This document shows, piece after piece, positions 1-31,087 of a stretch of 64,000 bases of DNA (the stretch's first letter is position 1; every line of letters begins with the position of its first letter). The notes below the pieces were generated by a model. It saw nothing but the letters and a program-made list of their open reading frames with translations. It did no database searches and was not told the DNA's origin. Source of the DNA: Malacoraja senta (Eukaryota). The stretch is from assembly GCA_038087875.1 (NCBI GenBank), contig CM075977.1:228346001-228410000 (forward strand), given 5' to 3'. A program made the translations under genes and the position numbers.

Positions 1-1088
1 TATTTCTATCACCTGGAGGTTCCTTTCCAAAGTGCACATCATTCTGACGTGGGAATATATCACTGCTCTTATACCAAAGTCTAAAGCTTAGGCCTTACAA
101 CATAACCCTTCACAGCATAACGGCACCAGTTCACAAAGGCAACTCATGTTCCAAAACATACATTTAAAAAAACTGGACAACCCAAAATGAGATAGACCAT
201 AGAAATGAAAACCATTCCTTGGCTGATACTTAATATTCTTGAGTAAATTTGACTAAGAATTAAATAGTGGGAAATTAAGATTTTATCGTTGTTAAAAAGG
301 TGAATATGTTTGCCATTGGAGAGCTTGGTAACATAATATGCGCATTACATTTCAGAAAGTATGGCACATATGCCTGGAATCAATAGAAACCTAGGAGTTT
401 CAATCTAATATTCTTCCCATAATTGTGATATTTCTATTTTCCAGCCTGCTTTGACATTTAACGAAACAATATTTCCAGAGTCCAGTAATTTCAGGATAAC
501 TACTTTAATTTACTACAGTATACTTTAAATTTGAATAGTACGTCAAATGTCCTCATAATGTGTGATCCATTGATCTGTGTAGTCTTTGGGAAGAAGGTTA
601 AAAAAAAAAAGAAAGACCAGAGGTGTTGCATGATGTTAAGATCACATTTTTGGCATTTAAAAATTAAAATATGAAAATAAAATTTTGCAAAGGTAACTTA
701 GATGCTGAAGTGGAAGACAGAAATTAACAAAAACATAGAGCGGGTTAGTTAACATTTGATAACATTATAACTCCTGAATTGTTAAATCCTTGCCTTTATT
801 TAGTGGCTGATTTGTTGTGGCTATCCTTGCTTTTCAAAAGCAAATTAAACACAGATATATTAATTTTCATAATTATTGCTAGCTGTGGTTACATAATGGT
901 ATTCCTACACAACACCATGGCTACTCAATGGACATATTTAAACAATGAACTTGGTTGTTCTTTCCTTTAAAACACTGCATCTTACATTGTGGATCTGTTG
1001 TACGTTGAGAGTTTCTGTGACACAAGCCAGAAACAAACATTTTTATTTGGAAATTCTGACATGTTTTAAACATATACTTTCCTTCCAG

Positions 1089-1206
1089 ATTGTCCATTGA
1101 TAGCGTTAATGCCGACCTACATTCACTTGACAGTAGAACAAAATCGATGCAAATACATCTAAAGCAAGACGTTGAACTATTTAATCAAATGGAGGATTTC
1201 ATTCAG
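1089..1206 (+). CDS. FHDC1: Internal coding exon of FH2-domain formin FHDC1/INF1 (LSIDSVNADL...QMEDFIQ)
   Basis: Acceptor ttccttccAG at 1087-1088, donor GTgagc at 1207. The 118-nt exon ends in phase 0 and splices in frame to the next exon. Peptide resembles recalled human FHDC1 (LSLENTEAEL...QMEDFLQ). Confidence 0.9.
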
Positions 1207-2803
1207 GTGAGCCAGTATCTAAAAGACAAACTAGTGCATGTCCAAATAACAGCAAGATGGAGTAGAGGTTAATTATTGTGGTGAGATGACTGCAGTTTAT
1301 TTAAAAACAGCATGGAATTCTAAGCTTCTGCAGTAGATTGCATGAGCTAGAAAGATTAACAAATGCAGGTCTGTTTGTTGTTCTGCTGGCAATCTTAATG
1401 TTCACACTGTACCTATCTCAAATGTCCAACGTTCTTCATGAGCTTTGTTTGAATTTATAGAGAATACTCAGAGTTTAGTTCTGGAGTACAATATTTATCC
1501 CACAACTGGGGTGATCAAATTACATACAATTGGTGTATACATTGATGACTTGTGGCCATCTTCCCTTGTGTGTAATAAATCTATATTCATTGCCTAAACA
1601 AAGAACATTCTGTTTCTGGCATAATTATAAGTATTAAATAACTGTTCAGAATTTTTGAAAGAGACCAAAAAGAACATGATTATTATGCTAACAAAATTTG
1701 GCTGCCATTTTAAAAATTGGACTTTATTCAAAGTAACATGATAAATTCCAATCTTATTAGGTCAATAATAGAGCTAGAAAATTGTAGCTCTGTTAATGAC
1801 GGCACAAAGATAGATCAGTGAGATTTAACAACTGTGCCAACTACAGGACAGAATCTTTGAGTATTCAACCTTTGCTGGATGTATCATTTAGAGGGTTTGA
1901 TTCGTTTATGTTTGAATTCTATTTCTGCTAGCAGTAGGGAAATGAATAATGTGTAAAACATGCCTAGGGAAGAAGTACTCATAAAACAGGTGGTTAAAAA
2001 AAACTCACAAGGCTGTGGATCTGGAGGATCTTGATTGTATGTTGTAGGATTTTCAAAAAAAAGTGATGGAGAGTTTGTGAGTTTATTCTTGTATAATTTA
2101 ACTCGCATTGAACAAGAACATAAGAAATAGGATCAGGAGCTGCCCTTGTGGTCCTCCAAGCTGGCTCCACTATTGAATAAGGCAGTGACTGGTCTGATAA
2201 TGATAAGATAATGATTTGCCTAATTTTCCCTTTCCCTCACCTCCTCCTTCTTAAGAGTCAAGTCAAGAGTGTTTTATTGTAATTTGTCCCAGATAGAACA
2301 ATGACATTCTTACTTCTCCTCCTCCTCACATCTCATGATCATTAACTCTTCCATGGACAAGTAAGTGTGTATCAGGGCCCTGAATAGATTCAATGAATCA
2401 TTAGGGAAAGTACTGTGCTATTTCACATTAGGCCAAAGTAATACCCAGATACATGAGGCTCATTGTTTACTTTAATGATTAAATTAATGATCAAGCTAGA
2501 TAGCAGGTACTGGCTATCATTTAGTGTCATTTGCTTCTAAAATCTTAATAACTATAATTTAGAAGAACAAGAAAGCTAGATTTTTTCAAAAACATCATCA
2601 TTTAGATTACCTGATTTTAGGACATTATTGTAATGTAACCTGTATGATGTTTGCAGATAATAATTGGTGAGAGTTTCACTGTACCTTAATTGGTATACGT
2701 GACCATAAAATACCTTTGAACTTTTTGAACCTTTGAGAATGAAGGCACAATTTTATTTCTGTTCATCGCGTGTTTGCTGATGTACTGTTATCTTACCCTG
2801 CAG

Positions 2804-2968
2804 CAAGGTTTGAGAGAAGTGGACAGATTAGAGGTGCAACGGATGGAATTGCAGAGGGAAGCCAATACTCTCATTGATTTCTTCTGTGAAGACAAAGAAA
2901 CAATGAAATTAGAAGAATGCTTCAAAATTTTCCAAGACTTTTGTGATAGATTCAAAAAAGCTGTCAAG
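2804..2968 (+). CDS. FHDC1: Internal coding exon of FHDC1, FH2 C-terminal part (QGLREV...LIDFFCEDKETMKLEECFKIFQDFCDRFKKAVK)
   Basis: Acceptor ccctgcAG at 2802-2803, donor GTAAGT at 2969; 165 nt, 55 codons. LIDFFCED...F..F..FC..F.KAVK is the FHDC1 FH2 signature. Confidence 0.93.
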
Positions 2969-10659: not shown

Positions 10660-10980
10660 TAGTTAATGGTCAAGTCAAGAGAGTTTATTGTCATATGTCC
10701 CAGATAGGACAATGAAATTCTTGCTTTGCATCAGCACAACGGAATATAATCGGCACAAATACAGAACATATATCAGTGAGTCCATATACCATTATATAAA
10801 TATATACACACATCAATAAATAAGCAGATAAAGTGCAAATAAACAGATAATGGTCTATTAGTGTTCAGAGATTTGTTTCAGTTGAGTTTAATAGCCTGAT
10901 GGCTGTGGGGAAGTAGCTGTTTCTGAACCTGGATGTTGCAGTCTTCAGGCACCTGTACCTTCTACCTGAAGGTAGCGGGG
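10660..10980 (-). mobile_element. 3' fragment of a Rex1/Babar-like LINE
   Basis: Tail gtcaagtcaag...tttattgtcatatgtcccagat, also seen at about 2255-2310, followed by sequence resembling the Rex1 RT C-terminal coding region. Confidence 0.55.
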
Positions 10981-11075
10981 AGTTAATGTGGGGATTTTGT
11001 GTTTATTTATTTAAGGGAAATTGTCATTAAAATAAAATAATGAATTAATGAAAAACAAATCTCTGTACCCCATAG

Positions 11076-13496
11076 GAAAACAGAGACAGAGAAATTAAGG
11101 AACTCTGTCAACAACAAAGGCTAAAGGAATTGGAAGAGAAACGGCATTCGTGGGCTGCTGGTGAACGAAGTATCTTTGGAAGGAGTAGTAGCGAAAATGA
11201 TGTGAAACTGCTCATCAAGGATGGACTACATGACCTTATAGCTTTCACTCATCCGAGATCTCAAAGCCCCGGGGGTGTAAAGAGAACTAGAAGCAGGCGC
11301 TTACGCTCATCGGAAGGTTCTGCTATTGACAGCCATTTATTGTCATTTTTGCAGGCTGTGAGTACAGATGAACAAGTTAAGTCAAACAGTATCCCTCGTT
11401 CTGTTGCACGTTGCTCTAGACAGAGGGTAGCCTGGCAAGAGATGTCAGAAACCCGTGATGGAAGCTTAGACAGTGCCCACTTTGACTCCAATCAGGGCTG
11501 TGCTCATACAACAGTTATAAAAGATAGCTATCTCTGCATGGCTTCAGCTGAGCCATGCACTGCTAGGAATACAGAGACTGCTCCTACAGAGAACTTCACA
11601 AAGACTGAAAGTGAAATTGGTCAGCATGAACAAGATGCCTACAATAACAATGAGAATATAATAAAGGATAATGCCCACACAGAGTATACAGACATCACAA
11701 ACCTAAACCAGATGATCGCCTCCAAACAGCAGCTTGAGCTTCTTGAAGGTTTACAGATTTTCAATTACTCCAGTGTCGCTGACTCTAGCCAAGTGACGAC
11801 GTGTGATGATGTTACACTAACAGACCTGGAGTACAGCGAAGACCTGAGTTTGCATACTCCTACTACAGATGTGGGTTTGTCGACACCGAGTACAGATGTG
11901 AGTGTGCAGACTCCAAGTACAGATGTGGGTATGCAAACTCTCAGTACAGATGTGGGTGTGCAGACTCCAAGTACAGATCTGAGTGTGCAGACACCTAGTA
12001 CAGATGTGAGTGTACAAACTCCTGGTACAGAGGAGAATTTGCAGACTACAGATGCAGATGTCATTGTGCAGGCCTGTGATACAGATATGAGTCCCCTGAT
12101 GTCTAGCACTAGTGTAGGCATTCAGACATCTACTAGCTCTGCTTCTGGTGTATTTTCTGGTCTGGTCTCAAAGATATTTGATGGTGAATCATCCTGCTTT
12201 ATGGGTTCTCGGTCATTACCACAGAAAATAAAGAATACAGAAGGGACTGAAGTATCCATCCAGAGTTCAGATGCAGCTAATAACTCTGTTTTAAACAAGG
12301 AAAGTAGAACTGTGTTTTTTGTTTTGGGATATACAGGTGGTGGAGATTGTTCTGAACCTTCAGAGCAATGTGAAGTAAAAGCTGCCTGCCAGAAAATCCA
12401 AGAATCACAATACCAATTTAAAAGTCCTAAAGGAGATCACACAGAAGTTTCTAATGATTTGTCAGACATGAAAAGGGACAATCCTCTCATTCCCATTACC
12501 AAAAATATTACCATTAATAATGACAGTGCTATTGAGGCAGTCTCTGAGATAATGAACTTACCAAAGGTAGCAAAGCAGATTTGCAGTTTAAAGCAGCCTA
12601 GTACGGTTAGAGGAGAAGCATTGCCCACTCCAAAAACAACTTTGCATTGTTTGAGCCGTCCAGTTCCTCCTAAAACTTCAAGGACAACAAACCACCCTAA
12701 TAATGAGGAAATCAGGAGGGTTTTGCCAATATCAAAGTCAAGTAGAAGATCCAATAGTGTCAGAAGACCAGAAGCAAAAGCATTAAGTAGTGATGAACAA
12801 AAACACTCTCAAAAGGCTTCAGGGTCAAAGTGGCGAGACAATTGGTCAAAGATTCCTCGCAGGTCTAGCTATCCAGTGGCAGAACAAAAGCCAACAAAAG
12901 AAACTGCTGCTTTGGCTAATTCATCTAATAGCATTACAAAGCGTAAAGACTCCCTCAGAAAACCTAGTGCTAAGCCAGTCCGAAATATTCCCAAGCCAAA
13001 GCCTGATGAAAGCAGCAAGATTTGTCGCTCAGTTACAAGAAGCGTCCCCAGGCACAGCACAAATACAGGTGGAACAACAGAATCCATGGAAGGAAATAGT
13101 AATTCAGCCTCACCAATGCTTACTCCCAGCTTTGCCAGAAACACTGTGGCCTCTTCCTCTCGACGGCAGAGGACAGATTCCAGACCGATTCCCAGCACAC
13201 CTCCGCAGTCCACCAAAGCAACAAACCTCACCAGAACCTCTTCGCAGAGGCAAACTATGCCCGAATACGTTGGAACAAATCATACAAAGAGCAGTGAAAA
13301 TACCAACATGAAACGGCCAAGTACCCAAAAACTGGGGAGCAAGACTGAAGAGGAGGATAAGGCACCAACATGCAAAACACTGTCCACCTACACAGGCGAC
13401 AACACTTTGCAAAAATCAACTGAAAAGAAACACCTTCCAGCCACAGATTCCATTAGAAGCAAGAAAACTCCAGAAAGATCATCGAAGTGGAAGTAA
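11076..13496 (+). CDS. FHDC1: Terminal coding exon of FHDC1 (long low-complexity tail with C-terminal microtubule-binding region)
   Basis: Acceptor ccccatAG ends at 11075; frame continues ENRDRE... into ORF 11130..13496 to TAA. Contains RHSWAAGE, RSSSENDVKLL and TPSFARNTVASSSRR, motifs I recognise from FHDC1/INF1. Confidence 0.9.
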   Translation, partial: ENRDREIKELCQQQRLKELEEKRHSWAAGERSIFGRSSSENDVKLLIKDGLHDLIAFTHPRSQSPGGVKRTRSRRLRSSEGSAIDSHLLSFLQAVSTDEQVKSNSIPRSVARCSRQRVAWQEMSETRDGSLDSAHFDSNQGCAHTTVIKDSYLCMASAEPCTARNTETAPTENFTKTESEIGQHEQDAYNNNENIIKDNAHTEYTDITNLNQMIASKQQLELLEGLQIFNYSSVADSSQVTTCDDVTLTDLEYSEDLSLHTPTTDVGLSTPSTDVSVQTPSTDVGMQTLSTDVGVQTPSTDLSVQTPSTDVSVQTPGTEENLQTTDADVIVQACDTDMSPLMSSTSVGIQTSTSSASGVFSGLVSKIFDGESSCFMGSRSLPQKIKNTEGTEVSIQSSDAANNSVLNKESRTVFFVLGYTGGGDCSEPSEQCEVKAACQKIQESQYQFKSPKGDHTEVSNDLSDMKRDNPLIPITKNITINNDSAIEAVSEIMNLPKVAKQICSLKQPSTVRGEALPTPKTTLHCLSRPVPPKTSRTTNHPNNEEIRRVLPISKSSRRSNSVRRPEAKALSSDEQKHSQKASGSKWRDNWSKIPRRSSYPVAEQKPTKETAALANSSNSITKRKDSLRKPSAKPVRNIPKPKPDESSKICRSVTRSVPRHSTNTGGTTESMEGNSNSASPMLTPSFARNTVASSSRRQRTDSRPIPSTPPQSTKATNLTRTSSQRQTMPEYVGTNHTKSSENTNMKRPSTQKLGSKTEEEDKAPTCKTLSTYTGDNTLQKSTEKKHLPATDSIRSKKTPERSSKWK
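11856..12131 (+). repeat. Coding 27-bp tandem repeat (unit TPSTDVSVQ), 6 well-conserved plus about 4 degenerate units
   Basis: Units start at 11856, 11883, 11910, 11937, 11964, 11991, 12018 and so on: TPTTDVGLS/TPSTDVSVQ/TPSTDVGMQ/TLSTDVGVQ/TPSTDLSVQ/TPSTDVSVQ/TPGTEENLQ. Confidence 0.95.
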
Positions 13497-19241: not shown

Positions 19242-20270
19242 TTATGGGCCGTTGTCAGAGACAAGCTCTTCAGGTAATCCATGACATGCAAAGATAGACC
19301 GCAATGCCTCTATTGTCCTTTCTGTTGTGTTTGTACCCATATGTATCACCTCAATCCACCTATCGACTAAAACAAGAAAATTATTATTCCCATGTTCACA
19401 AAAATCCACATGAACCCTCTGAAAAGGTCTTGTAGGCCAAGACCATGTTTGCAAAGGGGTTTTGGCAGGCCTACTTCTACAACTCTGACAGGTGCGACAT
19501 TTGCTTGCCATTGCTTCTATGTCATTGTCCAATCCTGGCCAATACGTGCAACCTCTGGCTGTAGACTTCATTCCCACAATACCTGTGTGTTCACTATGGA
19601 GTTGTTTATGTAATCTTTGTCTTAAACAATTGGGTACTACAACTCTGTGACCACATTTAATACACCCTTGCTCATATGACAGTCCATGTCGTCTATTGTG
19701 ATAAGGTTTTAGTTCATTAGTACATTGTTTTATTTCTGACCATCCACACAAAGTTTGTTCATATACTTGTTTTAGCACTGTGTCTTTTTGAGTTTCAGCA
19801 GCAATTTCAGCTGCTGTGACTGGAAAGTCATTGTCCACTGCTTCTGTAACATAGATAGCACCTTCAGTGCTCACATCTGATGCTTCATGAGGCAAACGCG
19901 ACAATGCATCAGCGATAGCATTTTCTTTTGAGCTGCGGTACTCAATGCTGTAGTCATACTGTGACAGGAGAACTGCCCAGCGCTGCATCCTCGAGGCTGC
20001 CATTGTAGGTATTGCTGACCGAGGACCAAGAATAGCGAGAAGTGGCCTATGATCAGTAACCAGGGTGAATTTCCCACCCAACAGATACTGATTGAATTTC
20101 TTGATCCCAGAGATGATACCAAGGGCTTCTTTTTCGATTTGTGCATAATTACGCTCACTCTTGGTAAATGTACGTGATGCAAATGCTATAGGCTTTATTG
20201 TCCACGTTCCATTACATGTGAAATCACAGCCCCAACCCCACAACTAGACGCATCACAAGCTAACTTTAGC
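19242..20270 (-). pseudogene. Gypsy pol: RNase H and integrase remnant
   Basis: LKLACDAS...PIAFASRT...YAQIEKEALGII...TDHRPL; H..H..C..C zinc finger; RVHVDF; ELVSDNGP. Frameshifts present. Confidence 0.92.
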
Positions 20271-20748
20271 CCGAGAGCCGTTGGAGAGGTCGCAGAGGGA
20301 GGAGCTACACCCGAGCGGTAGGATTTAAAGAGGAGCGCGGGGCTTGCTTCTACAGAGGCCCGAGAGCCGTTGGAGAGGTCGCAGAGGGAGGAGCTACACC
20401 CGAGCGGTAGGATTTAAAGAGGAGCGCGGGGCTTGCTTCTACAGAGGCCCGAGAGCCGTTGGAGAGGTCGCAGAGGGAGGAGCTACACCCGAGCGGTAGG
20501 ATTTAAAGAGGAGCGCGGGGCTTGCTTCTACAGAGGCCCGAGAGCCGTTGGAGAGGTCGCAGAGGGCGGAGCTACACCCGAGCGTTAGGATTTAAAGAGG
20601 AGCGCGGGGCTTGCTTCTACAGAGGCCCGAGAGCCGTTGGAGCGGTCGCAGAGGGAGGAGCTACACCCGAGCGGTAGGATTTAAAGAGGAGCGCGGGGCT
20701 TGCTTCTACAGAGGCCCGAGAGCCATTGGAGCGGTCGCAGAGGGAGGA
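20269..20748 (+). repeat. 89-bp GC-rich tandem repeat (5 full units plus a partial) at the 5' end of a CR1-type LINE
   Basis: gcccgagagcc recurs at 20269, 20358, 20447, 20536, 20625, 20714; units differ at only a few positions. Confidence 0.96.
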
Positions 20749-23700
20749 GGGCCCGAAATCTGCAACGTTCCAAGTTCCACTTAAAAAACAAGTGGGTTTG
20801 AGGAAGCCGCTGATTGGCGGAAGCAGACAAGAGGGAGCAGCTGATTGGGAGTCAGATCCCTGCTGATTGTACTGTATTGTAGCAGTTTGTTTTGTATTGT
20901 ATCTTAGGTAAGAGGAAAAAGAGAAGAGGTCTTGAAAGGAGAATTTAGGGAGTTGGGAGGAGAGTTAAGGAGAAGGACTACAAAGGTAACAATCTCAGGA
21001 TTACTACCTGTGCCATGCGACGGTGAGAGTAGGAATGGAGTGAGGTGGAGGATAAATGCGTGGCTGAGGAACTGGTGCAGCGGGCAGGGATTCAAATTTC
21101 TGGATCATTGGGACCTCTTTTGGGGAAGGTGTGACCTGTACAGAAAGGACGGGTTGCACTTGAACCCGAGGGGGACCAATATCCTGGCGGGGAGATTTGC
21201 AAAGGCTACTGGGGAGACTTTAAACTAGAACGGTTGGGGGGAGGGACTCAAATAGAGAAAGCTAGTGGAAAATGTGGGAGGCAGGAGGCAGAGAAGGGAA
21301 GCACTTGGACCCAAAATGTAGGGGAGAAAGAAGAAAAAGATAATAAACAGAGAATAAGTGGTGGTGGGTTTCTTAAATGTGTATATTTTAATGCTAGGAG
21401 CATTGTAAGAAAGGTGGATGAGCTTAGAGCCTGGATTGACACCTGGAAGTATGATATTGTGGCGATCAGTGAAACATGGTTGCAGGAGGGCTGTGATTGG
21501 CAAATAAATATTCCAGGATTTCGTTGCTTCAGGGGTGATAGAATTGGAGGGGCAAGAGGTGGGGGTGTTGCATTGCTTGTCAAGGAAGATATTACAGCAG
21601 TGCTTTGGCAGGATAGATTAGAGGGCTCGTCTAGGGCGGCTATTTGGATGGAACTGAGAAATCGGAAAGGTGTAGCAACACTTATAGGGGTGTATTATAG
21701 ACCGCCAAATGGGGAGCGAGAATTGGAAGAGCAAATATGTAAGGAGATAGCAGATATTAGTAGTAATTGTGGGAGATTTCAATTTTCCACACATAGACTG
21801 GGAAACACATTCTGTAAAAGGGCTGGATGGTTTGGAGTTTGTAAAATGTGTGCAAGATAGTTTTTTGCAGCAATACATAGAGGTACCTACTAGAGAAGGG
21901 GCAGTGCTGGACCTCCTGTTAGGAAATGAGACAGGGCAGGTGGCGGAGGTATGCGTCGGGGAGCACTTCGGGTCCAGTGATCACAATACCATTAGTTTCA
22001 ATATAATTATGGAGAGGGTCAGAACTGGACCTAGGGTTGAGATTTTTGTTTGGAGAAAGGCTAACTTTGAGGAGATGCGAAAGGATTTAAAAGGAGTGAA
22101 TTGGGACATGTTGTTTTATGGGAAGGATGTAGAAGAAAAATGGAGGACATTTAAGGGTGAAATTTTAAGAGTACAGAATCTTTATGTCCCTGTTCGGTTG
22201 AAAGGAAATAGTAAAAAATGGAAAGAGCCATGGTTTTCAAGGGAAATTGGACACTTGGTTCGGAAAAAGAGAGAGATCTACAATAATTATAGGCAGCATG
22301 GAGTAAATGAGGTGCTTGAGGAGTATAAAGAATGTAAAAAGAATATTAAGAAAGAAATTAGAAAAGCTAAAAGAAGATATGAGGTTGCTTTGGCAAGTAA
22401 GGTGAAAGTAAATCCAAAGGGTTTCTACAGCTATATTAATAGCAAAAGGATAACAAGGAATAAAATTGGTCCATTAGAGAGTCAGAGTGGACAGCTATCT
22501 GCAGAGCCAAAAGAGATGGGGGAGATATTGAACAATTTATTTTCTTCGGTATTCACGAAGGAGAAGGATATGGAATTATGTGAGGTAAGGGAAACAAGCA
22601 GTGTAGCAATGGAAACTGTGAGATTCAAAGAAGAGGAGGTGCGGACACTTTTGAAAAATATGAAAACGGATAAGTCTCCAGGTCCTGACAGGATATTCCC
22701 TAGGACATTGAGGGAAGTTAGTGTAGAAATAGCAGAGGCTATGACAGAAATATTTCAAATGTCATTAGAAACGGGAATACTGCCGGAGGATTGGCGTACT
22801 GCGCATGTTGTTCCGTTGTTTAAAAAGGGTTCGAAGAGTAAACCTAGCAATTATAGACCTGTTAGTTTGACGTCAGTGGTGGGCAAATTAATGGAAAGGA
22901 TACTTAAAGATAATATATATAAGCATCTGGATAAGCAGGGTCTGATTAGGAACAGTCAACATGGATTTGTGCCTGGAAGGTCATGCTTGACTAATCTTCT
23001 TGAATTTTTCGAAGAGGTTACTAGGGAAATTGATGAGGGTAAAGCAGTGGATGTTGTCTATATGGACTTCAGTAAGGCCTTTGACAAGGTTCCTCATGGA
23101 AGGTTGGTTAAGAAGATTCAATTGTTGGGTATTAATGGTGGAGTAGCAAGATGGATTCAACAGTGGCTGAATGGGAGATGCCAGACAGTAATGGTGGATG
23201 GCTGTTTGTCAGGTTGGAGGCCGGTGACTAGTGGGGTGCCTCAGGGGTCTGTGTTGGGTCCACTGTTGTTTGTCATGTACATCAATGATCTAGATGATGG
23301 TGTGGAAAATTGGATTAGTAAGTATGCAGATGATACTAAGATAGGTGGTGTTGTGGATAATGAAGTAGATTTTCAAAGTCTACAGAGAGATTTAGGCCAT
23401 TTGGAAGAGTGGGCTGAAAGATGGCAGATGGAGTTTAATGCTGACAAATGTGAGGTGCTACATCTCGGCAGGACAAATCAAAATAGGACGTACACGGTAA
23501 ATGGTAGCGAATTGAGGAATGCAGTTGAACAGAGGGATCTAGGAATAACTGTGCATAGTTCCCTGAAGGTGGAATCTCATGTAGATAGGGTGGTAAAGAA
23601 AGCTTTTGGTGTGCTGGCCTTTATAAATCAGAGCATTGAATATAGAAGTTGGGATGTAATGTTAAAATTGTACAAGGCATTGGTGAGGCCAATTCTGGAG

Positions 23701-24300
23701 TATGGAGTACAATTTTGGTCGCCTAATTATAGGAAGGATGTCAACAAAATAGAGAGAGTACAGAGGAGATTTACTAGAATGTTGCCTGGGTTTCAGCAAC
23801 TAAGTTACAGAGAAAGGTTGAACAAGTTAGGTTTTTATTCTTTGGAGCGCAGAAGGTTAAGAGGGGACTTGATAGAGGTCTTTAAAATTATGAGCGGGTT
23901 AGACAGAGTGGACGTGGATAAGCTTTTCCCATTGAGAGTAGGGAAGATTCAAACAAGGGGACATGACTTGAGAATTAAGGGAAAGAAGTTTAGGGGGAAC
24001 ATTAGGGGGAACTTCTTTACTCAGAGAGTGGTAGCTGTGTGGAATGAGCTTCCAGTGGAAGTGGTGGAGGCAGGTTCGATGTTATCCTTTAAAAATAGAT
24101 TGGATGGGTATATGGACGGGAAAGGAATAGAGGGTTATGGTCTGAGTGCAGGTAGATGGGACTAGGGGGAAGTATTTATTTTTTATTTAAAAAAATATAT
24201 ATATATATAATTAAAAATAAAAAAATGTTCGGCACGGACTTGAAGGGCCGAGATGGCCTGTTTCCGTGCTGTTATGGTTATATGGTTATATGGTTATATG
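20269..24300 (+). mobile_element. Near full-length CR1/HER1-type LINE (family A, copy A1) with ORF1 internal deletion and one ORF2 frameshift
   Basis: 5' monomers; esterase C-terminal part 20932..21228; APE endonuclease 21234..21860 (ISETWL, YYRPP); RT 21769..24165 (YMDFSKAFDKV, PQGS, KYADD); tail ggcctgtttccgtgctg(ttatatgg)n. Confidence 0.93.
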
Positions 24301-24311
24301 GTAAGGGGAGT

Positions 24312-25247
24312 ATGAGGGCCAGGGCAGTTTACTGTTCTGGATGTCAGATGTGGGAAGTCATGGAGTCTGATAGCCCTCCAGACGTCCACATCTGCGCCAG
24401 GTGTATCGAGATGGGGCTCCTAATGGACCGTATTAGGAACCTGGAGCAGCAGCTCGATGACCTCCGTCTGGTCAGGGAGAGCGAGGAAGTCATTGAGAAG
24501 AGTTACAGGGAGGTGGCCACTCCAAGACCACAGGAGGCAGGCAAGTGGATCACGGTTGGGAGAGGCAAGGGGCACAGGCAGGGACTAGAGAGTACCCCGG
24601 TGGCTGTACACCTTGACAATAAGTACTCCTGTTTGAGCACTGTTCGGGGGGACAGCCTACCTGGGGGTAGCGACAGCGGCCGGGCCTCCGGTATAGAGAC
24701 CGACCCTGTTGCTCAGAAGGGTAAGGAAAAGAAGAGGAGGGCAATACTAATAGGGGACTCTATAGTTAGGGGGTCAGACAGGCGATTCTGTGGACGCAGT
24801 CGGGAGACCCGGATGGTAGTTTGCCTCCCTGGTGCCAGGGTCTGTGATGTGTCTCAACGTGTCCAAGATATCCTGAAAGGGCAGGGAGAGGAGCCCGAGG
24901 TCGTGGTACATATAGGTACCAATGACATAGGTAAAAAAAGAGAAGAGGTCCTGAAAGGAGAATTTAGGGAGTTAGGAGGGGAGTTAAAGAGAACGACAGC
25001 AAAGGTAACAATCTCGGGATTACTGCCTGTGCCACGCGACAGTGAGAGTAGGAATGGAGCGAGGTGGAGGATAAATGCGTGGCTGAAGGACTGGTGCAGA
25101 AGGCAGGGATTCAAATTTCTGGATCATTGGGACCTCTTTTGTGGAAGGTTCGACCTGTACAAAAAGGATGGGTTGCACTTGAACCTGAGGGGGACCGATA
25201 TCCTGGCGGGGAGATCTGCAAAGGCTACTGGGGAGACTTTAAACTAG
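24312..25247 (+). CDS. CR1-type LINE ORF1p (copy A2): Cys-rich/coiled-coil N-terminus plus SGNH esterase domain, apparently intact (311 aa)
   Basis: ATG at 24312; CxxC...CxxC; GDSIVR, GTND and DGLH esterase blocks; stop TAG at 25245-25247. Confidence 0.85.
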   Translation: MRARAVYCSGCQMWEVMESDSPPDVHICARCIEMGLLMDRIRNLEQQLDDLRLVRESEEVIEKSYREVATPRPQEAGKWITVGRGKGHRQGLESTPVAVHLDNKYSCLSTVRGDSLPGGSDSGRASGIETDPVAQKGKEKKRRAILIGDSIVRGSDRRFCGRSRETRMVVCLPGARVCDVSQRVQDILKGQGEEPEVVVHIGTNDIGKKREEVLKGEFRELGGELKRTTAKVTISGLLPVPRDSESRNGARWRINAWLKDWCRRQGFKFLDHWDLFCGRFDLYKKDGLHLNLRGTDILAGRSAKATGETLN

Positions 25248-28056
25248 AATGGTTGGGGGAGGGACTCAAATAGAGAATACTATTAGACAGTGTGTGAGGC
25301 AGGAGGCAGAGCAGGAAAGCACTCAGACCCAACATGTAGGGGGGAAAGATGAAAACAATAATAAACAGAGAATAAGAGGTGGTGGGGTTCTTAAATGGGT
25401 GAGCAGAGAAACAGAGGGGTGTAAATTGCGGGCGGAAGCAATAGGTAGCAAGGTGAAAAGTAAAAGTGGCAGGCAGACAAATCCAGGGCAAAAATCAAAA
25501 AGGGCCACTTTTCAACATAATCGTATAAGGGGTAAGAGCGTTGTAAAAACAAGCCTGAAGGCTTTGTGTCTCAATGCAAGGAGCATTCGTAATAAGGTGG
25601 ATGAGTTGAACGTGCAGATAGCAATTAATGATTATGATATAGTTGGGATCACGGAGACATGGCTCCAGGGTGACTAAGGCTGGGAGCTGAACATCCAGGG
25701 ACATTCAATATTCAGGAGGGATAGAGAGAAAGGAAAAGGAGGTGGGGTAGCGTTGCTGGTTAGAGAGGAGATTAACGCAGTGGAAATGAAGGACATTAGC
25801 TTGGAGGATGTGGAATCGGTATGGGTAGAGCTGCGAAACACTAAGGGGCAGAAAACGCTGGTGGGTGTTGTGTACAGGCCACCTAGCAATAGTAGTGAAG
25901 TTGGGGATGGCATCAAACAGGAAATTAGAAATGCGTGCAACAAAGGCAAAACAGTTATAATGGGTGACTTCAATCTACATATAGATTGGGTGAATCAAAT
26001 TGGCAGGGGTGCTGAGGAAGAGGATTTCTTGGAATGTATGCGGGATAGTTATCTAAACCAACATGTAGAGGAACCAACGAGAGAGCAGGCTATTCTAGAC
26101 TGGGTATTGAGTAATGAGGAAGGGTTAGTTAGCAGTCTTGTTGTGCGTGCCCCCTTGGGCAAGAGTGACCATAATATGGTTGAGTTCTTCATTAGGATGG
26201 AGAGTGACATTGTTAATTCAGAAACAACGGTTCTGAACTTAAAGAAAGGTAACTTTGAGGGTATGAGACGTGAATTGGCCAAGATTGACTGGCAATTAGT
26301 TCTAAAAGCGTTGACGGTGGATATGCAATGGAAGGCATTTAAAGACTGCATGGATGAACTACAAAAATTGTTCATCCCAGTTTGGAAAAAGAATAAATCA
26401 GGGAAGGTAGTGCATCCGTGGATAACAAGGGAAATCAGGGATAGTATCAAAGCAAAAGATGATGCGTACAAATTAGCCAGAAAAAGCAGCATACCAGAGG
26501 ACTGGGAGAAATTCAGAGACCAGCAGAGGAGGACAAAGGGCTTAATTAGGAAAGGGAAAATAGATTATGAAAGGAAACTGGCAGGGAACATAAAAACTGA
26601 CTGCAAAAGTTTTTATAGATATGTGAAGAGAAAGAGATTAGTTAAAACAAATGTAGGTCCCTTGCAGTCAGAAACAGGTGAATTGATCATGGGGAACAAG
26701 GATATGGCGGACCAATTGAATAACTACTTTGGTTCCGTCTTCACTAAGGAAGACATAAATAATCTGCCGGAAATAGCAGGGGGCCGCGGGTCAAAGGAGA
26801 TGGAGGAACTGAGTGAAATCCAGGTTAGTCGGGAAGTGGTGTTAGGTAACTTGAATGGATTAAAGGCCGATAAATCACCAGGGCCAGATAGGCTGCATCC
26901 CAGAGTACTTAAGGAAGTAGCTCCAGAAATAGTGGATGCATTAGTGATAATTTTTCAAAACTCTTTAGATTCTGGAGTAGTTCCTGAGGATTGGAGGGTA
27001 GCAAACGTAACCCCTCTTTTTAAGAAGGGAGGGAGAGAGAAAACGGGGAATTACAGACCAGTTAGTCTAACATCGGTAGTGGGGAAACTGCTAGAGTCAG
27101 TTATTAAAGATGGGATAGCAGCACATTTGGAAAGTGGTGAAATCATTGGACAAAGTCAGCATGGATTTACGAAAGGTAAATCGTGTCTGACGAATCTTAT
27201 AGAATTTTTCGAGGATGTAACGAGTAGAGTGGATAGGGGAGAACCAGTGGATGTGTTGTATCTGGACTTTCAGAAGGCTTTCGACAAGGTACCACATAAG
27301 AGATTAGGATACAAACTTAAATCACACGGTATTGGGGGTTCAGTATTGATGTGGATAGAGAACTGGCTGGCAAACAGGAAGCAAAGAGTAGGAGTAAACG
27401 GGTCCTTTTCACAATGGCAGGCAGTGACTAGTGGGGTACCGCAAGGCTCAGTGCTGGGACCCCAGCTATTTACAATTTATATTAATGAGCTGGATGGGGG
27501 AATTGAAAGCAACATCTCCAAGTTTGCGGATGACACTAAGCTGGGGGGCAGTGTTAGGTGTGAGGAGGATGCTAGGAGACTGCAAGGTGACTTGGATAGG
27601 CTGGGTGAGTGGGCAAATGTTTGGCAGATGCAGTATAATGTGGATAAATGTGAGGTTATCCACTTTGGTGGCAAAAACAGGAAGGCAGACTATTATCTAA
27701 ATGGTGGCCGATTAGGAAATGGGGAGATGCAGCGAGACCTGGGTGTCATGGTACACCAGTCATTGAAAGTAGGCATGCAGGTGCAACAGGCAGTGAAGAA
27801 AGCGAATGGTATGTTGGCTTTCATAGCAAGAGGATTTGAGTATAGGAGCAGGGAGGTTCTACTGCAGTTGTACAGGGTCTTGGTGAGACCACACCTGGAG
27901 TATTGCGTACAGTTTTGGTCTCCAAATCTGAGGAAGGACATTATAGCCATAGAGGGAGTGCAGAGAAGGTTCACCAGACTGATTCCTGGGATGTCAGGAC
28001 TTTCATATGAAGAAAGACTGGATAGACTTGGCATACTCGCTAGAATTTAGGAGATT

Positions 28057-30668
28057 TTTTTTAATTTTTTTTTAAAGTTATTTTTATTAGAAGTACGGTA
28101 AATTACAGTAATACACAACACTTATATCTTAATACATTTTTTATACCGCTTCATTTTTTTGAGCTTTAAGAGAAAGATAGAAGTAAGAAAAGTAAAGAAA
28201 GTGCGCAAGAGTCGTGAAGTGCAAGAGAGTGTTGTGAAAAGAAAGCCCCTTAGAAAAGAAGTTAGAGAAGGAAGTAAAGTAAGAAAGTAGACCCTAGAAA
28301 AGAAAGAAAAAGAAAGTAGGAACAATCGCAGAAAGGGAACCACCAACCAAGTCTGTTTTTATTGTTTTACCTCCCATTACCAGGTCCTGATACCATTTCT
28401 TTATTTATTTATTTTTAAAATTACTATTGCACCTCATGCTTGTAATAGGTCCAGAAACGTAGACCACGTCTTTTGAAATTGGTCTGCTTTACCTGCTAAG
28501 AGGAATCTCATCTCTTCCAGATGTAATGTTTCCAACATATTTGATGTCCACATTTTTATTGTTGGTGTGGGCGCATTTTTCCAGAATTTAAGTATGAGCT
28601 TTTTTCCCATTATTAGCCCGTAATTGAATAAGTTCTTCTGATACACGTTTAATTCAGGGATACCTTCCGATATTCCAAAAATGATCCATTCTGGTTTTGG
28701 TACCAGTTTTATTTTAATTAATTTTGAGAAAATATCAAATATTTCATACCAGAATTTTTGGATTTTTGTACAAAAAAACAAAGAATGCGCTATGGTAGCT
28801 TCTTGACATAGACATTTATCACAGATTGGTGAAACATTAGGAAAGATTTTATTTAATTTAGTTTTTGAATAATATAGTCTATGTAATGTTTTGAATTGGA
28901 TGAGCGTATGTAGTACGTTGATCGAACATTTATGCACCTGTAGTAAATGGTTATCCCAGCTCTCTTTTGAAATTTTTATAGCTAATTCTTGTTCCCAGTC
29001 TCTTCTAATTCCATCTGTTGTGGGTATTTCTATGTTTAAAATGATATTATATACAGTGGCTTGCAAAAGTATTCATACCCCTTGAACTTTTCCACATTTT
29101 GTCACGTTACAACCACAAATGTAAATGTATTTTATTGGGATTTTATGTGATAGACCAACACAAAGTGGTGCATAATTGTGTAGTGGAAGAAAAATGGTAC
29201 ATGGTTTTCAAATTTTTTTACAAATAAAAAACTGAAAAGTGTCGCGTGCAAAAGTATTCAGCCCCCCTGAGTCAATACTTTGTAGAACCACCTTTCGCTG
29301 CAATTACAGCTGCAAGTCTTTTGGGGTATGTCTCCACCAGCTTTGCACATCTAGAGACTGAAATTTTTGCCCATTCTTCTTTGCAAAATAGCTCAAGCTC
29401 AGTCAGATTGGATGGAGGGCGTCTGTGAACAGCAATTTTCAAGTCTTGCCAGAGATTCTCAATTGGATTTAGGTCTGGACTTTGACTGGGCCATTCTAAC
29501 ACATGAATATGCTTTGATCTAAACCATTCCATTGTAGCTCTGGCTGTATGTTTAGGGTCGTTGTCCTGCTGGAAGGTGAACCTCCGCCCCAATCTCAAGT
29601 CTTTTGCAGACTCTAACAGGTTTTCTTCCAAGATTGCCCTGTATTTGGCTCCATCCATCTTCCCATCAACTCTGACCAACTTCCCTGTCCCTGCTGAAGA
29701 AAAGCATCCCCACAGCATGATGCTGCCACCACCATGTTTCACAGTGGGGATGGTGTCTTCAGGGTGATGTGCAATGTTAGTTTTCCGCCACACATAGTGT
29801 TTTGCATTTAGGGCAAAAACTTCAATTTTGGTCTCATCTACCCAGAGCACCTTCCTCCACATGTTTGCTGTGTCCCCCACATGGCTTGTGGCAAACTGCA
29901 AACAGGACTTCTTATGGCTTTTTTTTCAACAATGGCTTTCTTCTTGCCACTCTTCCATAAAGGCCCGATTTGTGGAGTGCACGACTAATAGTTGTCCTGT
30001 GGACAGATTCTCCCACCTGAGCTGTGGATCTCTGCAGCTCCTCCAGAGTTACCATGGCTGCTTCTCTGATCAATGCTCTCCTTGCCCGGCCTGTCAGTTT
30101 AGGTGGACGGCTATGTCTTGGTAGGTTTGCAGTTGTGCCATACTCTTTCCATTTTCGGATGATGGATTGAACAGTGCTCTGTGAGATGTTCAAAGCTTGG
30201 GATATTTTTTTAATAACCTAACCCTGCTTTAAACTTCTCCACAACTTTATCCCTGATCTGTCTGGTATGTTCCTTGGGCTTCATGATGCTGTTTGTTCAC
30301 TAATATTCTCTAACAAACCTCTGAGGCCTTCACAGAACAGCTGTATTTATACTGAGATTAGATTACACACAAGTGGACTCTATTTACTAATTAGGTGACT
30401 TCTGAAGGCAATTGGTTGCACTGGATTTTATTTAGGGGTATCAGAGTAAAGGGGGCTGAATACTTTTGCACGCCACACTTTTCAGTTTTTTATTTGTAAA
30501 AAAATGTGAGAACCATGTATCATTTTCCTTCCACTTCACAATTATGCGCCACTTTGTGTTGGTCTATCACATAAAATCCCAATAAGATACATTTACGTTT
30601 GTGGTTGTAACGTGACAAAATGTGGAAAATTTCAAGGGGTATGAATACTTTTGCAAGCCACTGTAAGT
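28057..30668 (-). mobile_element. 5'-truncated L1/Tx1-type LINE (ORF2 C-terminal Cys-rich region, 3' UTR, poly-A), carrying a Tc1 insertion
   Basis: ORF 28434..29066 (QFKTLHRLYYS...CDKC...H.LFFC); poly-T on + from 28057; 12-bp TSD ATTTAGGAGATT at 28045-28056 and 30669-30680. Confidence 0.88.
29054..30663 (-). mobile_element. Full-length (1610 bp) Tc1-family DNA transposon, IR/DR-type TIRs, frameshifted DD34E transposase
   Basis: TA at 29052-53 and 30664-65; 213-bp TIRs (29054-29266, 30451-30663) with inner and outer TGCAAAAGTATTCA repeats. Transposase 30284 to 29272 with DETK, QQDND and NPIE (34 residues between D and E). Confidence 0.96.
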
Positions 30669-31087
30669 ATTTAGGAGATTGAGAGGGGATCTTATAGAAA
30701 CGTACAAAATTCTTATGGGGTTGGACAGGCTAGATGCAGGAAGATTGTTCCCGATGTTGGGGAAGTCCAGGACAAGGGGTCACAGCTTAAGGATATGGGG
30801 GAAATCCTTTAAGACCGAGATGAGGAAAAACTTTTTCACACAGAGAGTGGTGAATCTCTGGAACTCTCTGCCACAGAGGGTAGTTGAGGCCAGTTCATTG
30901 GCTATATTTAAGAGGGAGTTAGATGTGGCCCTTGTGGCTAAAGGGATCAGGGGGTATGGAGAGAAGGCAGGTACGGGATACTGAGTTGGATGATCAGCCA
31001 TGATCATATTGAATGGCGGTGCAGGCTCGAAGGGCCGAATGGCCTACTCCTGCACCTATTTTCTATGTATCTATGTATCTATGTATC

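Follow-up and report, generated by a model that had tools for sequence, protein, structure and literature searches.

A coding minisatellite in the tail of elasmobranch FHDC1, with possible LC8 docking sites in skates

A 64,000-nucleotide stretch of the skate Malacoraja senta (GCA_038087875.1, contig CM075977.1, positions 228,346,001 to 228,410,000; hereafter the window) contains, in the last coding exon of the formin gene FHDC1, a tandem array of 27-bp units. The array is a genuine, elasmobranch-wide coding minisatellite. Many of its nine-residue units end in Gln-Thr (QT) and resemble the short motifs bound by the dynein light chain LC8 (DYNLL). Judged by published sequence rules, the skate QT units are plausible LC8 docking sites, a reading to which we give a probability of about 0.4, and docking by the shark units is doubtful. 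Two other explanations were weighed, a tolerated spacer and a multiplied function of the motif from which the array grew.

Structure of the array and its place in FHDC1

Tandem Repeats Finder detected a period of 27 bp at 11851-12031, with 6.7 copies, 80% matches, no indels and a score of 208-255. Read in frame, the array extended over window positions 11838-12128 on the + strand, inside the last FHDC1 exon. The first five units were EDLSLHTPT, TDVGLSTPS, TDVSVQTPS, TDVGMQTLS and TDVGVQTPS, and the next four were TDLSVQTPS, TDVSVQTPG, TEENLQTTD and ADVIVQACD. A degenerate unit and then TSVGIQTST followed. The Q codons of the six QT units lay exactly 27 nt apart, from 11907 to 12042, giving a nine-residue spacing. 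A preliminary description of this DNA had read six consecutive QT motifs at exactly this spacing together with SVGIQT, and the in-frame reading agreed with it. The synonymous third-position variants that it listed among the units (act/aca, cca/ccg/cct and cag/caa) were also present. The array had the properties of a coding minisatellite: its period is a multiple of three, its copy number changes by whole units, and its units are more alike within lineages. An open reading frame (ORF) of 118 codons on the - strand (11765-12121) also spanned the repeat, and is most simply explained as a by-product of stop-free periodic sequence.

By homology, the gene is FHDC1, with its 3' part on the + strand of the window. 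The last exon shared 92-93% identity with the FHDC1 protein of the thorny skate Amblyraja radiata; with shark FHDC1 proteins the identity was 55-64%. Its splice acceptor at 11076 was clean (ccccatag followed by gaaaac). The exon encodes a post-FH2 box, a disordered linker with the repeat, and conserved C-terminal boxes. In FHDC1, C-terminal boxes 4-5 form the microtubule-binding domain (MTBD) (PMC6080654). FH2 was the sole Pfam domain of the full-length FHDC1 homologues, all of which carried it, and a Pfam search of the exon translation (11076-13496) gave no match. The combination of an FH2 domain with a long tail that bears conserved microtubule-binding boxes at its C-terminal end points to an FHDC1/INF1 formin, a protein that the literature describes as cytoplasmic. 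The preliminary description had named the gene FHDC1, and both the identity to Amblyraja FHDC1 and the upstream FH2 exons supported this name. It had also placed the array between FH2 and the C-terminal microtubule-binding region, which was correct; the C-terminal boxes downstream were invariant in the homologue alignments.

Distribution and origin

The array was found at the same place in all eight elasmobranch FHDC1 proteins examined, with 3 to 15 units. The sample comprised two skates and the sharks Heterodontus, Scyliorhinus, Stegostoma, Chiloscyllium, Cetorhinus and Pristiophorus; neither protein search returned a chimaera or ray orthologue. The skates had 11-12 units and the six sharks 15, 11, 11, 8, 8 and 3, which made 79 units in total. 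The array had initially been taken for the invention of one lineage, and its presence throughout the sample shows that it is not confined to skates. The unit consensus was TDVSLQTPD in sharks versus TDVSVQTPS in skates, the skate units sharing V5 and S9 and the shark units L5 and D9. The terminal unit was SVGIQT in both skates and NLQT, NFQT or NFQP in the sharks. No array was present in the bony vertebrate FHDC1 examined, which covered coelacanth, lungfish, bichir, sturgeon, several teleosts and tetrapods (frog, lizard, turtles, alligator, many birds and mammals). The absence from mammals anticipated in the preliminary description was thus seen in the mammalian proteins examined.

A single copy of TDLETx[DE]DLS[LF][HYR]S stood at the corresponding place in sarcopterygians (coelacanth, frog, birds, turtles and alligator). 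Ray-finned fishes had a degenerate form of this motif, and the mammals examined had lost it. The motif lies, like the array, between the LxGLxxF box and the FY/FFVxD box, and has the same D-L-S-hydrophobic core. However, it is present only once, and with H/Y/R-S where the array has Q-T it does not resemble an LC8 motif. Because the first array unit, EDLSL(H/Q)TP, corresponds to the vertebrate single-copy motif, the array appears to be a tandem amplification of an older short motif. The alignments date its origin to the last ancestor shared by sharks and skates, or earlier, through tandem duplication of this pre-existing motif (acidic-DLSL-H/Q-S/T). Whole units are still gained and lost.

This origin bears on the explanation in which the array multiplies a function of the ancestral motif, acting as a multisite phosphorylation or docking cluster for the partner of that motif through the D-hydrophobic-S-hydrophobic core and the Thr-Pro that follows it. 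We consider this quite unlikely. In its favor, conservation of the seed [DE]DLS[LF][HYR]S, which has no QT, extends from coelacanth to birds and turtles, and of the 79 array units 74 retained D, 65 retained S and 77 retained a hydrophobic residue. The phosphorylation consensus of Plk1 is [D/E/N]-x-S/T-hydrophobic, and most units showed this pattern. FHDC1 biology is also tied to PLK1 signalling, as constitutively active PLK1 rescues the effects of FHDC1 overexpression and the FHDC1 partner Cep170 binds PLK1. However, the Plk1 consensus is very degenerate, and the phospho-site is destroyed by Gly in place of Ser in three window units and by Asn or Gly elsewhere. The better conservation of Q than of S is left unexplained, and mammals have lost the seed motif. 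The LC8 docking and phosphorylation readings need not exclude each other. Several other motif classes were compared by eye, and none of them (clathrin box, SUMO-interacting motif (SIM), LC3-interacting region (LIR), B56 LxxIxE, SxIP, polo-box S-pT-P and nuclear export signal) fitted the unit or the seed cleanly.

Fit of the skate units to LC8 motif rules

As a yardstick we used the positional rules of Jespersen 2019, with 79 binder and 32 non-binder peptides. Under these rules, Q occupies position 0, and its two neighbors (-1 and +1) are of medium size and either polar or hydrophobic. The favored residues at +2 are P, D and E; position -4 should be polar, with Asp above all, and position -3 at least as large as Val. 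A bulky aromatic residue at -2 and an internal Pro are disfavored. Both TDVSVQTP and TDVGVQTP conformed to all of these rules, with D at -4, V at -3, a small residue at -2, V at -1, then Q, T, and P at +2. In our count on the Jespersen 2019 table, D occurred at -4 in 31/79 binders, V at -3 in 7/79, S at -2 in 20/79, V at -1 in 6/79 and P at +2 in 12/79. The anchors in the window were VQT (four), IQT, MQT and LQT (one each). Five window units (four of the six QT units and SVGIQT) passed the rules strictly, as did six units in Amblyraja. The LC8 likeness proposed in the preliminary description therefore holds at the level of sequence rules. Its concern that the Pro following each QT might obstruct binding was not substantiated, since Pro is favored at +2 in Jespersen 2019. 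A check against the ELM class for LC8, [^P].K.TQT, gave no match because the units lack Lys at -3 and Thr at -1; this pattern matches only 13 of 67 known LC8 instances. A rough log-odds calculation by hand from the binder table scored the skate unit at about 10.0, the binder SON at 9.35 and the non-binder ANKIB1 at 9.25, and did not discriminate between them.

The skate units also differed from the ancestral state in a directional way. The internal units have V at -1 and, in three of them, G at -2, where the outgroup seed has L/F at -1 and S at -2. The separate terminal unit has GIQ where the sharks have NLQ or NFQ. All of these shifts at -1 and -2 lead toward the common GVQT/GIQT class of LC8 motifs. 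They provide the best internal hint for LC8 docking, resting on two or three events. The S to G change at -2 removes the serine, which fits an LC8 role and not a phospho-serine role.

Spacing of the units and LC8 occupancy

The shortest characterized linker in a multivalent LC8 client has 3 residues; it is the QT2-3 linker of Drosophila ASCIZ, at which neighboring LC8 dimers are already in contact and off-register species are seen. The linkers of Nup159 are 4-5 residues long, and those of 6 and 9 residues in ASCIZ behaved well. Human ASCIZ has one uncharacterized one-residue linker. KANK1, with about 15 residues per site, forms a multivalent LC8 rod from many weak sites with short uniform linkers. 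In the skate array, an 8-residue motif recurs every 9 residues, which leaves a linker of one residue. No multivalent LC8 client characterized has a linker as short as this, which makes it unlikely that every rung of a ladder would be occupied. We infer that adjacent units could not be filled together. The use of alternate units would give a 10-residue linker, just beyond the well-behaved ASCIZ linkers. LC8 dimers might then fill at most every second unit, with about three in the array and one at SVGIQT, in either of two registers.

The likeliest specific role would be that of a strip of weak LC8 sites, pairing the two tails of the FH2 dimer and stiffening the linker between FH2 and the microtubule-binding region. 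The Thr-Pro after each Q could act as a proline-directed phospho-switch on LC8 binding; JNK phosphorylates the DKSTQTP site of Bim. The fuller proposal is that in skates, and perhaps in all elasmobranchs, a DNA tandem repeat has made a working multivalent LC8 strip in a formin, an adjustable rod from the actin-nucleating FH2 ring to the microtubule-binding end with dimers on alternate units. As a whole, this would be an unlikely outcome. To our knowledge, no link between formins and LC8 has been described. If true, no earlier LC8 ladder in the literature considered would have originated from the expansion of a minisatellite, with its valency tuned by gain and loss of units, and it would connect a microtubule- and Golgi/cilium-associated formin to the dynein light chain.

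Should LC8 bind the skate array, this would illustrate how the expansion of a motif already present can yield, in a single step, a multivalent scaffold for a hub protein. The elasmobranch arrays would then form a natural valency series of 3 to 15 units with two anchor variants, VQT and LQT. Such a series would allow tests of the way in which LC8 occupancy depends on linker length and on weak sites, with units closer together than in any array studied. If the array does not bind, it would serve as a warning that a repeat passing every published positional rule for LC8 can be a tolerated spacer.

Evidence against docking and constraint on the repeat

Several observations weigh against LC8 docking, beginning with the one-residue linker described above. 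Strict-rule units numbered only 0 or 1 in each shark. The sharks, among which the largest arrays occur, had almost exclusively LQT, Leu at -1 was present in none of the 79 training binders, and the sole tested LQT peptide, from PLK1, was a non-binder (Jespersen 2019). The LC8Pred proteome scan does pass one LQT site, RDIGLQTP of NCKAP5. Given the absence of LQT from the 79 binders, the anchor is of LC8 type in skates only. Human FHDC1 was not among the 374 sites of the LC8Pred scan, and no paper linking FHDC1 to DYNLL/DYNLL1 was found in the literature. The peptide SDVSSQTP of ANKIB1, shown not to bind, matches the skate unit at all positions except -5 and -1, and LDVSSQTD of KIBRA, a binder, has a core nearly identical to that of the skate units. 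With one of these peptides binding and the other not, this sequence class is borderline for LC8. The Pristiophorus array was nearly lost, with 3 units left.

Selection at the DNA level also provided little support. These tests compared two species, Malacoraja senta (the window) and the bamboo shark Chiloscyllium. Over the whole exon, the synonymous divergence (dS) was 0.89 and the nonsynonymous divergence (dN) 0.29. For dN/dS, the post-FH2 box gave 0.10, the C-terminal region 0.27 and the array 0.64, the last being among the highest of five exon segments, with positional orthology within the arrays doubtful. The six core units showed 19 differences from their consensus, of which 9 were synonymous (omega about 0.4, P = 0.04-0.08). 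Over all nine units, 13 of 43 differences were synonymous (omega 0.7-0.9, P = 0.2-0.4), and in the shark array 11 of 35; neither was distinguishable from neutrality. The preliminary description had taken the synonymous variants as a sign of protein-level constraint. This was marginally upheld in the six core units and was not significant over all nine or in the shark.

The changes at unit positions 1-9 over the 79 units numbered 22, 5, 17, 14, 18, 10, 17, 23 and 32. D(-4) and Q(0) were the most stable, with 5 and 10 changes. The heterogeneity over the first eight positions gave a chi-square of 19.9 (P about 0.006), for units that share ancestry and are not independent. Q was kept in 69/79 units and T(+1) in 62/79. 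Of the losses, the 10 of Q were to H, S, L, I or K, and the 17 of T(+1) were to I, M, A, N or P, and both count against docking. 

The array may instead be a tolerated spacer, and we regard this as a serious possibility. Slippage or unequal exchange in a disordered linker would then have produced a repeat with no partner, which alters the linker length only, and its likeness to LC8 motifs would be a coincidence. The repeat would persist since whole-unit changes keep the frame and the essential C-terminal region forbids frameshifts. The higher dN/dS of the array than of the conserved boxes, the whole-array counts compatible with neutrality, the variation from 3 to 15 units across species and by one unit either way among skates, and the common decayed units all favor a spacer. 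LC8-like motifs are also often false positives: of the peptides predicted by PSSM (position-specific scoring matrix), 7/19 bound (Jespersen 2019).

A further point for a spacer, and against docking, came from an exhaustive search of representative proteins, in which the unrelated proteins, unlike the FHDC1 orthologues, matched the array only. One of them, LOC124128908 of the abalone Haliotis rufescens, carries about 30 tandem SSPDVVVQT 9-mers (DV-x-VQT) at residues about 245-520. This array lies after a membrane span, with a SEA domain on one side and Ig and chitin-binding domains on the other, is not homologous to FHDC1, and is presumably an extracellular, mucin-like stalk. Such arrays can thus arise without a link to LC8, which makes motif resemblance alone weak evidence. 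The other database matches to the array region alone (collagen-like, PEVK-like and other repeats) were low-complexity look-alikes and not homologues.

Three observations fit a spacer poorly. Conservation is uneven over the unit positions, the array has been kept in every sampled elasmobranch despite a skate-shark dS of about 0.9, and the skate substitutions at -1 and -2 all bring the sequence closer to the LC8 consensus, both in the repeated units and, separately, in SVGIQT.

Transcription, variation and disorder

The array is transcribed and is part of the mature exon. In RNA-labelled runs of two related skates, contigs covered the last exon with the array; the preliminary description had pointed to RNA as the evidence for exon inclusion, and these contigs supply it. 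One of the RNA contigs stopped matching exactly at 11076 and continued for 1.6 kb elsewhere, consistent with a spliced transcript. In the Malacoraja senta runs, whose kind is unlabelled, contigs crossed the upstream intron too, so these runs look like DNA.

The RNA contig of one related skate lacked a single 27-nt unit at 11905, and Amblyraja had one unit more than the window. In one Malacoraja senta run, a T>G difference at 12064 turned the Ile of the decayed unit ADVIVQACD into Ser; Ser is the state in Amblyraja and two other skates. The same run also had T>C at 12989. Both are probably allelic differences.

An AlphaFold2 model of the array and its flanks, computed with an alignment of eight elasmobranch FHDC1 sequences, had a mean predicted local distance difference test score (pLDDT) of 41, with values of about 36-42 over the array and no secondary structure there. 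The model suggests that the array region is an intrinsically disordered linker; in a cytoplasmic protein such as FHDC1 it would be accessible. A folded repeat, such as a beta-solenoid or an RTX-like nonapeptide roll, was rejected, as glycines are lacking in the units and no structure emerged from AlphaFold2.

Features of the window

The features of FHDC1 and of the array are collected in Table 1. The intron just 5' of the last exon (10700-11020) had word depths of 10^5-10^6 in the Malacoraja senta runs and 10^3-10^4 in the RNA-labelled runs of relatives, compared with 4-30 for the exon. This stretch is a very high-copy interspersed repeat. Downstream of FHDC1 (20269-31087), a series of long + strand ORFs was present (21769-28050), and a strong GC skew of 0.33-0.45 extended across about 20000-28000.

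Table 1. Positions of FHDC1 exons and array elements in the window
Feature	Position	Strand	Basis
FHDC1 FH2-domain exon, partial match	1036-1206	+	tblastn, Amblyraja FHDC1 residues 112-165, 72% identity
FHDC1 FH2-domain exon	2798-2968	+	tblastn, Amblyraja FHDC1 residues 164-220, 95% identity
FHDC1 last coding exon, 806 codons and stop (13494-13496)	11076-13496	+	ORF, acceptor, homology
Ancestral motif TDLEYS and first (seed) unit EDLSLHTPT, conserved among jawed vertebrates	11820-11864	+	Alignment with single-copy vertebrate motif
Unit 2, TDVGLSTPS, S in place of Q	11865-11891	+	In-frame unit table
Six consecutive QT units, DVSVQT, DVGMQT, DVGVQT, DLSVQT, DVSVQT, EENLQT	11892-12053	+	Tandem Repeats Finder, unit table
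Two degenerate units, ADVIVQACD and TDMSPLMSS	12054-12107	+	In-frame unit table
SVGIQT, GIQT-class LC8-like motif	12111-12128	+	27 residues after last array Q
Conserved C-terminal boxes	12633-13493	+	Invariant blocks, e.g. FARNTVASSS stretch, in homologue alignments

Comparison with known systems

Nonapeptide repeats with QT or TP in each unit also occur at the C-terminus of Spt5. These repeats share the 9-residue period, but they are CDK9 substrates in the nucleus and are not homologous to FHDC1. A 155-aa protein from an ENA assembly, in which about nine nonapeptides stand in tandem (AVNAGLQT with P or S next in most of them), matched the Pfam family of Spt5 C-terminal nonapeptide repeats and is a QT-P 9-mer array of another kind.

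Among single LC8 motifs, the validated binder RCVSVQTD of SON has the VSVQT core in common with the skate units. SDKGVQTP of ZFPM1, QSVGVQVE of GKAP and NNIGIQTM of 53BP1 resemble the G-containing skate units and SVGIQT. The multivalent LC8 clients differ from the skate array in that their binding is proven and that of the array predicted from its sequence. In the literature considered they are also not described as tandem repeats at the DNA level, and their characterized linkers have at least 3 residues instead of one. Nonetheless, the dynein light chain-interacting domain (DID) of Nup159, ASCIZ/ATMIN, the L2 region of KANK1, and Chica/FAM83D are like the array in that several xQT-type motifs follow each other closely within a disordered stretch, the protein itself being already a dimer or linked to the cytoskeleton. 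KANK1 shares with FHDC1 a link to microtubules, and it uses many weak sites with short uniform linkers.

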